Shown: positions 5,301 through 8,300 of the stretch, piece by piece
How positions within the stretch are numbered: position 1 is the stretch's first letter
How the letters are laid out: each line of letters starts with the position of its first letter
Assembly: GCA_965235115.1 (NCBI GenBank)
Contig: OZ249442.1
Coordinates: 16,678,001-16,742,000 of the forward strand
Direction of reading: 5' to 3'
Length of the DNA: 64,000 bases
DNA from: Laetmonice hystrix
Lineage: Eukaryota
Program-made: the position numbers and the translations under genes
The notes under the pieces: generated by a model
Databases searched by the model: none
What the model was told of the DNA's origin: nothing
What the model saw: the letters and a program-made list of their open reading frames with translations, nothing else

Positions 5301-8300
5301 AAGGCGATAAATATGTAATTGCTAATAATTTTACACTAATTTTGGATAGTTTATAAAAATAAATTATGGAGATTTTTTGTGAGTATATTTACCCATTGAG
5401 AAGGCATACCTGTGTATATGTTACATGACTTACATCTAGGCATTTGTATTAGAAATTAGGACCCTGCTTTATTTTTTAATAAAATCCTGATAGATAACAA
5501 TACGATTGGCCCTTTTCGGATTTTGAAAACTGACACATGTTAACATTTTTTATGCTATATGTAATTCATTTTTTACCCCACCCGTCTGCTGCTAAATTGT
5601 GAAGATTTGCAACAGTGACCCATAGTATTGCCTGCTCCCTCAAACATTACTTCACTGCATACCAGAAAAAAACATTCACCGTTTCAAAGAGCTTAAAATT
5701 GAATCTCTTTTTAAAACATAAGCCCTATTGTGGAAATCAAATCATTATTCGTAATAGTCCCGGTCAATGCGCCTGTGAATAGGCCTACACCAAGAAACTG
5801 GACTTACCTTTGAAGCCCAGTAGCATCGTGTTAAAATTTTAGGTTCGAGTGCTAAGCAAAAGTATTTTAAAAATGGAGTTATGGTAGGACCCCAAATTAC
5901 TGTTTGGTTCGATCGCTGTTTTCTAAAGCCAAGTCGGGCTGGGAGCTAGCCATAATGACACACGGCAGTTGACTGGTCAGCTACAGTGAGATGGACCCTT
6001 TTATTGTGTCAGTGCACTGTCAAGGTGTGCATGGTAGATAGAGCATGTAGTTTGTACACGTGTGACTGGCCCTGGTTTCAGAGTGGACCGTGATCGGAGT
6101 GGACATATCACCACAGTGGAACTACAAGCTGCCCTGGCTAACGGTAGGTGTAACCCCTCTAACCTGGCCACATCAGTCCATGCTAGGTTAGGGCTGGCCC
6201 GCAGTGCATTAATTGTTGATGGAGTATTGACTGTGCCTCGCTGTGGCCATTTTCAGAGTTGACCGGGACCGAAGCGGATACATAGCCGCCAAGGAACTGC
6301 AGGATGCAATGGCTAATGGTATGTGGGTCCATATGCAGAGTGACCAGGTGTGCTGATCAGATCTTATTAAACCTCAGAAAATTTAACTGGGGACATATTG
6401 ATTTGTTAAGTCCTGAGAATCCAAGATATGGAAAACAAACTAACTGCTAACATTGCCGTTATTGCCGTTATCATTTTATAAAACTTGTATAATAAGTTTC
6501 ATTTCCGGCTTTTTTTACCAGTAGTAGTACCAGTACCTTTGTTATATGTTTACTAATAGTTTTATCTCTAAGTCTACCAAAACAAAATAAGTGAAGATAT
6601 ATATTTATTTAGAAATTGGGCTTTTTAAAACTAAATCAGGATGGAACAAAAAAAACGTTCCCCTTTTCCTGCAGTGAGTGACCTGCGTCATGACTGATTC
6701 AATATTGTTTTAAATAATCAAACCACATGTGCCAGTGAAATGTGCTGTTCCAAAGGACGGTAGAGAAATAAGATTGGAATCAGAACAACGGTAACACCTA
6801 ATGAATATATACAGTGGGGTCCCACTTAGAGGAGCACCCGTGGGACTTGTCCTTTCATCATTACAGTGGTCTCTCTGCGGATTGGTCATTTTCACTGGGT
6901 ATAGTTTTTTCTTGGGTCAAATCAGACTTGGTACTGCACTATATAATATAGTATAATGGTCCTAATTAATGGTTGGTCACTCTACTAGGGTAGTTTTTAA
7001 GTTAGACTCCACTGTATATGTTAGGAATCGACCCTGTAGTAGTATACATCTGCTTTGGACTGCTTGTTCAGGTATGTGCTCAGAAAAAGGCGCAAGGTTT
7101 TCAGTTTTGAGTGGCAAGGGGTGTGGGTGGGGGGCTATTTTTTTCAGATGATAGGCCTAATAAAAATTCCTGCCGGGCAGCACTTGAACTTTTTTAGTTT
7201 TATGTCGGTCGGCTAAAATCGGTGCCGGGCACTGCCTGGTGTAAGCACATCCCTGCTTGTCTCACCAGCCAATCTGTGTTATTAAAGTGTTATTAGAGTG
7301 AACCAGGACAGGGACTTAATTCAGTGAAAGTATTGATCTGAATTAAGAATGTATGTTAATCTTGATGGGACACGTTAGTATAATTTACCCCTGATTGAAA
7401 GGTGAGTGTTCTCAAGATTTGGGATTCCTTGCCATGTTGTCTGTCTGTGTTGGGGAAGAAAGCTCTGGCCCCCGTGTTGTTTTGGTATTTAAGCAGTTTT
7501 AGATCTATGGTGTTGTATTTTGGTTGGTATAGTTTACGTTTAATTGACCTCAGTAGCTCCTCCCAACAACCACAGTACTGTAAAATTTTACCGAGAGCAC
7601 CTTTGTGTTCTCAACTGAATATTAGATGTAACTGACTTTCAACAACCTGTTTTCTTTAGTAACGTAATTGACAAATATTCAATATTGGTAAATCTAGGAA
7701 TAATATTTTATAAATTGTAACTGATTTTAAAAGGAAATGGTCATCTTGAAACGTACTGCTGCATGGATTATGTCAATGTGTTTGTTACTTTGCAGGCAGC
7801 TGGACCCCGTTCAACCCGGAGACGGTTCGACTTATGATAGGTGAGCTGATCATTGACTAGTAGCTCCGACTCAATGTTTCCACAGGTATTACTTCTTTAA
7901 GCAACTGGAAGCCTGTAAGTGGCAGTACAGAAACCACTAGCGTGAACTTTCTGTCCTGTCCAAACTAAACCTTGTAATCGTGTACCAGACTTACTACAGA
8001 CATTAAACTCTGCCGATAGTCGACACCTTTGGGACCAGCGTTTTAGTGTCGGCTTAGAGAAATGATGATATACACACAAGTCACCATTATGTTAATTTAT
8101 ACATAATGCCAGGAATCAGTCGACGTAGTGTGTAATTTGTGCTTTCATTGTTTTGATTATGCAATACACACTACGGACTACAGACACATGGATTCCTGGC
8201 TTTAGCTGACATTATGCCAGGCTGCACTGACATACCGTGCCAAACTTGTTCAGAGTTGTCTGGGTGCTGTTCTGTGTGACCTCTTCTTTCCATCAATGTG

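Follow-up and report, generated by a model that had tools for sequence, protein, structure and literature searches.

The DNA considered here is a 64,000-nt stretch of the genome of Laetmonice hystrix (GenBank assembly GCA_965235115.1, contig OZ249442.1, positions 16,678,001 to 16,742,000 of the forward strand), which is referred to as the window and numbered from its first letter. It carries a six-exon PDCD6/ALG-2 gene (2315-9680, forward strand), in which the exon encoding the first EF-hand (EF1) is present more than once. ALG-2 couples Ca2+ signals to two systems of membrane traffic, ESCRT (by way of ALIX) and COPII (by way of Sec31A). The locus raises the question of how many EF1 exons there are, whether a single one enters each messenger and what decides which one is taken. 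An original prediction, made from the letters alone, had described two mutually exclusive EF1 exons, termed 2a and 2b. The follow-up described here points to three tandem EF1 exons, named A, B and C, in a single PDCD6/ALG-2 gene, and it is probable that one of them is included per productive mRNA, giving up to three ALG-2 sensors. The three copies and the intron between the last two are located as follows:

3705-3766, forward strand: EF1 exon copy A, 62 nt, within intron 1; acceptor ttcag/G, donor G/gtatgt; 21 residues.
6082-6143, forward strand: EF1 exon copy B (2a of the original prediction), 62 nt; acceptor ttcag/A, donor G/gtaggt; 21 residues.
6144-6256, forward strand: B-C intron, 113 nt, holding the 8-bp complement TGGCCACA (6165-6172) / TGTGGCCA (6242-6249).
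6257-6318, forward strand: EF1 exon copy C (2b of the original prediction), 62 nt; acceptor ttcag/A, donor G/gtatgt; 21 residues; seen in RNA.

Coordinates, 62-nt lengths, splice sites and 21-residue peptides predicted for 6082-6143 and 6257-6318 were all reproduced. Both copies of the proposed pair are thus real, but the number was too low, since the third copy at 3705-3766, discovered by an EF-loop pattern scan of the introns and separated from copy B by an intron of 2315 nt, had been overlooked. The three exons have the length and phase in common that mark a tandem duplication, and each has AG/GT splice sites of its own. Pairs of copies are identical at 35-43 of 62 nt (43 for B versus C) and at 11-14 of 20 codons, and beyond the exons they have nothing in common but the splice-site consensus. 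The loop positions 1, 3, 5, 6, 8 and 12 (D, D, S, G, I, E) are kept in A, B and C. Three DNA runs (X1-X3) each yielded one contig across 5926-6838 with 0-1 differences from the assembly, so that the pair of B and C is not an assembly artefact.

As 62 is not a multiple of three, the full-length protein of 183 amino acids is obtained with exactly one copy, whichever of the three it is. Inclusion of no copy leads to a stop at codon 43, of A and B at codon 80, of A and C or B and C at codon 55 and of all three at codon 68, and all of these premature stops lie upstream of several exon junctions. Messengers with zero, two or three copies are therefore expected to be removed by nonsense-mediated mRNA decay (NMD). 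The frame check agrees with the earlier argument that inclusion of both 2a and 2b runs into a TAG, that skipping of both shifts the frame and that only an either/or choice is productive.

For each pair of copies, changes in the 20 full codons were counted by the Nei-Gojobori method, and Fisher's test was applied to synonymous versus non-synonymous change. The synonymous (pS) and non-synonymous (pN) values were 1.1 and 0.22 for A-B (Fisher p = 1e-7), 0.97 and 0.29 for A-C (p = 7e-6) and 0.81 and 0.15 for B-C (p = 1e-5). All three copies bear the mark of purifying selection, with saturated synonymous sites and low amino-acid change. It follows from saturated pS together with low pN that the duplications are old and that all three copies were kept as coding sequence. 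The persistence of two intact, same-phase copies with all their Ca2+ ligands in the face of saturated synonymous sites is far beyond chance (Fisher p <= 1e-5). In the DNA runs, the alternative haplotypes differ at many intron positions but nowhere within exons A, B and C.

RNA evidence comes from X4, a small run of the same sample comprising 58 million letters as assembled contigs, which is not recorded as RNA but behaves as RNA, whose tissue is unrecorded and which is the sole RNA-like source for this specimen. It was aligned over 2250-8100. One contig of 1535 nt with a depth of 190 covers 2305-2388 in exon 1, then jumps to 6257 and from 6318 to 7796, the start of exon 3. The joint 2388>6257 was reported as 2386>6255 (cut +2, GT..AG) and the joint 6318>7796 as 6317>7795 (cut +1, GT..AG); both joints are absent from X1-X3. 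Copy C is expressed and is spliced exon 1 > C > exon 3, as predicted. With this, two of the four junctions named in the original prediction, 2388>6257 and 6318>7796, were seen, whereas copy B (2a) has no contig in the sole RNA-like run.

The same arrangement was sought in relatives by listing the members of 90%-identity protein clusters, which hide sister isoforms, and by comparing isoforms of equal length. Equal-length RefSeq isoforms of PDCD6-like proteins whose difference is confined to the EF1 exon were found in the chiton Liolophura, in the gastropods Haliotis (three species), Gigantopelta, Biomphalaria and Littorina, in the bivalves Sinanodonta, Pecten, Argopecten and Mizuhopecten, in Octopus (two species), in the bryozoan Watersipora and in the brachiopod Lingula. 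In the nemerteans Tubulanus and Lineus equal-length isoforms likewise differ in the EF1 exon, with three EF1 versions in Lineus. At the level of the genome, tandem EF1 exons were found in Biomphalaria, Lingula, Watersipora, Ridgeia and Lineus:

Biomphalaria (L002): two tandem 62-nt EF1 exons of the same phase, spacer 823 nt.
Lingula (L003): two tandem 62-nt EF1 exons of the same phase, spacer 1264 nt.
Watersipora (L004): two tandem 62-nt EF1 exons of the same phase, spacer 52 nt.
Ridgeia, an annelid tubeworm (L006): two tandem 62-nt EF1 exons of the same phase, the second absent from the gene model, spacer 1070 nt.
Lineus (L013): three tandem 62-nt EF1 exons of the same phase, spacers 757 and 208 nt.
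Capitella, an annelid (L005): a single EF1 exon.

In Lineus longissimus each of the three EF1 exons is present in a RefSeq isoform. The unannotated second exon of Ridgeia piscesae (L006:5426-5487) has good splice sites and encodes VDTDRSGSISANELQMALSNG, which agrees in 19 of 21 residues with the second EF1 exon of Biomphalaria.

The explanation that we prefer is directly supported by the anatomy, the frame logic, the purifying selection on three copies and the use of C in RNA. In this model exactly one of A, B and C would be spliced in to give the 183-residue protein, any other number would lead to an early stop and predicted decay by NMD, and A and B would be used in other tissues, stages or conditions. 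The resulting sensors would have the Ca2+ ligands at loop positions 1, 3, 5 and 12 in common and would differ in loop and Pocket-3 residues. Several observations weigh against it. No contig of X4 lies over copies A or B, though contigs of depth 2-6 occur elsewhere in the stretch, which suggests that isoforms with A or B are at most a minor part of the X4 sample. Assemblers discard the weaker of two paths between shared flanks, and contigs cannot prove absence. Furthermore, the dN/dS values between the copies are compatible with a recent death of one of them, the RefSeq isoforms of the relatives are automatic gene models with RNA support unchecked, and the cluster can be lost, as Capitella has one EF1 exon. 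Two of these facts also feed the best-surviving rival, according to which C is effectively constitutive and A and/or B are unused relics, intact pseudo-exons or exons of negligible use: the sole copy seen in RNA is C, and Capitella manages with just one EF1 exon. However, saturated synonymous sites combined with conserved amino acids, frame, splice sites and Ca2+ ligands are unlike a long-dead copy, gene models include every one of the three EF1 exons of Lineus, and two copies are present in many relatives. We consider it unlikely that A or B is such a relic.

The assignment of the gene to PDCD6/ALG-2 carries over from the original prediction and is supported by matches to structures and by protein identity. 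Searched against the PDB, exon 4 matches ALG-2 with E = 6e-26, calpain with 5e-17 and sorcin with 1e-12. The assembled protein shows 79-86% identity to proteins named PDCD6, the best named matches being from chiton, bivalves, gastropods and a brachiopod, in keeping with a spiralian (lophotrochozoan-like) animal; protein searches for closer relatives gave no match above 86% identity. Pfam finds EF-hand matches on exons 4-6. The protein is closer to ALG-2 than to other penta-EF-hand (PEF) proteins and has five EF-hands after a short Pro/Gln-rich N-terminus. In its own numbering the ALG-2 functional residues are E38, L43 (M in copy C), W48, F51, F76, W80, E105, F113, R116, F139 and Y171, to be compared with E47, L52, W57, F60, F85, W89, E114, F122, R125, F148 and Y180 of the ALG-2 literature; human numbering equals own numbering plus 9, an offset fixed by the exon 4 alignment (residues 62-113 = chain residues 71-122). 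The position of human I92 is Val here and that of human G121 is Ser. The 627-Mb genome (35 contigs) contains one ALG-2-type locus, and the gene is a PDCD6/ALG-2 orthologue that is single in the genome. Two other PEF loci, both peflin-like, are located at G000:C1:64492077-64493255 and G000:C20:20312670-20313465, each on the minus strand, and have a different exon layout, in which a single exon spans EF1 together with the segment after it; the pieces read contain no duplication of that exon. The remaining exons of the ALG-2 gene, for which a tblastn search against the whole window found no duplicate (exons 1 and 3-6), are:

2315-2388, forward strand: exon 1, coding part; ATG at 2315, end in phase 2, donor GAG/gtaaat; the transcript contig starts at 2305 or earlier.
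7796-7840, forward strand: exon 3, 45 nt, 14 residues; the transcript contig continues past 7840 into the first bases of exon 4.
8590-8748, forward strand: exon 4, 159 nt, EF2-EF3.
9319-9428, forward strand: exon 5, 110 nt, EF4.
9579-9680, forward strand: exon 6, coding part, EF5; stop at 9678-9680.

The 3' untranslated region (UTR) is estimated from the 1535-nt transcript contig to be about 970 nt long.

What the choice of copy could mean for the protein can be read from the residues that it exchanges. The EF1 exon encodes human residues 35-55, a segment that comprises the complete EF1 loop (D36-E47) and the first part of helix alpha-2, the helix to which Leu52 and Ser53 of the hydrophobic Pocket 3 belong. 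Within the loop the copies differ at positions 2, 4, 7, 9, 10 and 11, with His, His and Tyr at position 7 and Ser, Thr and Ala at position 9 of A, B and C, respectively; outside the loop they differ at human positions 50, 52 and 53. The Pocket-3 equivalents of human Leu52-Ser53 are Leu-Ser in A, Leu-Ala in B and Met-Ala in C. It was reported that EF1 and EF3 are the high-affinity Ca2+ sites of ALG-2 (PMC5037681), that the exchange L52A strongly lowers Sec31A binding, that S53 lies in Pocket 3 and that E47A in EF1 abolishes binding (PMC4346919). By reasonable inference, the differences could change the affinity or kinetics of Ca2+ binding as well as the interaction with partners of the Sec31A type (ALG-2-binding motif 2, ABM-2). 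The case for a functional difference gains some weight because the exon also carries the Pocket-3 residues Leu52/Ser53, which vary between the copies.

How one copy is selected was approached through two further explanations. Steric exclusion of B and C, of the type known from tropomyosin and OGDH, would require an intron too short for splicing or a branch point too near the donor. The B-C intron is indeed short (113 nt), a perfect CTCTAAC can be read 13-19 nt after the B donor, the copies of Watersipora are just 52 nt apart, and duplicated Ca2+-site exons with distant branch points are known (PMC9177970, PMC7969005). However, several AGs between CTCTAAC and the acceptor leave no AG-free zone, while a conventional TTGAC about 27 nt before the C acceptor is followed by no AG and is the likely branch point of this acceptor. 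Its distance from the B donor, about 85 nt as read from the letters, is enough for splicing, so that the spacing between donor and branch point is not too short. Moreover, the A-B intron measures 2315 nt and the spacers of other species 208-1264 nt. Steric exclusion is accordingly rated very unlikely.

Marginally less probable still is a selection of the copy by competing RNA pairing, either with an 8-bp stem that masks the C acceptor, as put forward in the original prediction for 6165-6172 and 6242-6249, or with a Dscam-like docking/selector system. The perfect 8-bp complement does exist, with a duplex energy of -13.4 kcal/mol, and among the duplex energies computed for seven intron windows (21 window pairs) the start of intron 1 and the 150 nt before A, a repeat-rich pair, pair better than shuffles (z = -3.5). 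Yet the masking of the acceptor is unsupported and the stem within chance: when the 113-nt intron was shuffled with its dinucleotides kept, 129 of 2000 shuffles contained an inverted repeat of at least 8 bp, the minimum-energy fold lacks the stem, and 6060-6340 folds no better than its shuffled versions (z = +1.37). The longer intronic inverted repeats belong to repeated elements. Fold, shuffle, duplex and inverted-repeat scans detected no convincing docking-site/selector system and no single site able to pair next to A, B and C alike, a test that rests on this genome's sequence as introns are not alignable between phyla. For the choice among A, B and C the demonstrated constraint is therefore the reading frame, and both the short intron and competing RNA structure are unsupported.

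The three-exon cluster appears to be old. Copy A agrees in 18 of 21 residues with the first Lingula EF1 exon, copy B in 17 of 21 with the "TTVELQ" exon of Lineus and copy C in 16 of 21 with the "KELQDAL" exon of the chiton, while the best match among the copies within this gene reaches 15 of 21. For all of the variants compared (30/30), the nearest counterpart is found in another phylum and not among the copies of the same gene, a comparison that uses few columns (21) and is biased by its many-against-one design. In the 21-column tree A groups with Lingula (96/85), B with Lineus (82/77) and C with chiton and octopus (96/95). An EF1 type of the form "DTDRSG-SISANEL" is widespread and near-identical between tubeworm and snail (19 of 21 residues). 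The order of the exons is A (His/Phe type), B (Val type) and C (Lys type) here and Lys, Val and Ile type in Lineus, and is thus not collinear. The cross-phylum pairings would fit an origin of the cluster before these phyla split; one-to-one orthology is not claimed. A broader interpretation is put forward tentatively, as a possibility that we do not favour: the EF1 cluster might be an old spiralian invention that predates the divergence of molluscs, nemerteans, brachiopods and annelids and equips one gene with two to three sensors, which would differ in Ca2+ tuning and in the partners chosen through Pocket 3 (Sec31A type), and it might be one instance of a wider, undescribed swapping of single-EF-hand exons in animal PDCD6.

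Variants of other EF-hands were read from the gene models of other animals. PDCD6 isoforms of equal length whose difference is confined to the exon-5 region (EF4) are present in three species of amphioxus, in the venerid clams Mercenaria and Ruditapes (with three versions in each), in the myid clam Mya and in a ctenophore, Bolinopsis (isoform proteins P0232/P0323, P0334/P0322, P0179/P0296/P0295, P0299/P0187/P0297, P0175/P0294 and P0250/P0342). In these models the EF4 variants form another set of alternative homologous exons of the PDCD6 family, distinct from that of EF1. Lineus longissimus PDCD6 has two tandem last exons (EF5; L013:7919-8020 and 8109-8216) in different RefSeq isoforms, and in the brittle star Amphiura and the hydrozoan Hydractinia equal-length isoforms show a difference confined to the last exon. 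Six bdelloid rotifer models of 228-237 amino acids (P0001, P0178, P0186, P0189, P0206 and P0257) have two in-frame tandem exon-4 regions (EF2-EF3; 159 nt, a multiple of three); either these proteins genuinely have seven EF-hands, or the gene caller fused exons that are alternatives.

The window contains further sequence features in and around the gene. A foldback element resembling a miniature inverted-repeat transposable element (MITE) of 872 bp occupies 4151-5022 in the A-B intron and has terminal inverted repeats of 203 nt with 84% complementarity; in the DNA runs its k-mers reach a depth of about 6e5 versus about 60 for single-copy sequence, indicating a very abundant family, and it is present in X4 too. 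Moderate repeats with a depth of 10-200 times single copy are found in introns 1 and 2 (2446-3316 and 6954-7345), together with the short inverted repeats I2, I4, I7 and I8. A run of about 24 G (10367-10390) lies inside the estimated ALG-2 3' UTR, and three tandem copies of the 20-nt unit ctgtgacccacacttagtta (10630-10690) lie at or just past its estimated end. Runs of N are located at 12427-12564 (138 nt), 13012-13149 (138 nt) and 53805-53933 (129 nt).

Among known systems, the closest in anatomy are the spiralian RefSeq PDCD6-like isoforms X1/X2/X3, which concern the same gene and the same exon with the same 62-nt length, phase and tandem layout, Lineus likewise with three copies. Compared with these, the three variants of this genome have sequences of their own, none is of the IDTDRSG-SISANEL type, and one copy is seen in RNA. 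The novelty suspected in the original prediction is accordingly reduced, since the RefSeq models of relatives already contain the same switch, but full-text literature searches turned up no publication that describes duplicated or mutually exclusive exons for PDCD6/ALG-2. The kind, frame-policed tandem mutually exclusive exons, is well known, and the PDCD6 case is in public annotation and undescribed as far as searched; the arrangement is real but fairly ordinary, as the gene models of relatives show the same layout. Automatic annotation can miss such copies, as illustrated by the unannotated second exon of Ridgeia and by copy A, which was overlooked at the first reading here. If the three-exon model holds, the swap of a high-affinity EF1 loop together with two Pocket-3 residues would constitute a natural experiment on the tuning of Ca2+ response and partner binding within one gene.

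Within mammalian ALG-2 the splice form deltaGF122, which is the sole alternatively spliced form discussed in a review from 2016, similarly alters Ca2+ affinity and target choice (PMC5037681). In contrast to the EF1 exon swap, it uses an alternative donor that drops two residues by Pocket 1/2 in the EF3-EF4 linker. Frame-incompatible mutually exclusive exons policed by NMD resemble the cluster in their length, which is not a multiple of three, and here the NMD of double-inclusion products would be the corresponding step. The nearest functional analogue is the exon pair 19a/19b of alpha-actinin, in which homologous exons likewise swap the first EF-hand and change the Ca2+ response, yielding Ca2+-sensitive non-muscle and Ca2+-insensitive smooth-muscle isoforms (PMC4435478; PMC9177970). 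In alpha-actinin, however, one version loses Ca2+ ligands and a brain isoform has both exons in frame, whereas in the ALG-2 gene of Laetmonice hystrix the ligands are kept in all three copies and doubling of the exon breaks the frame.

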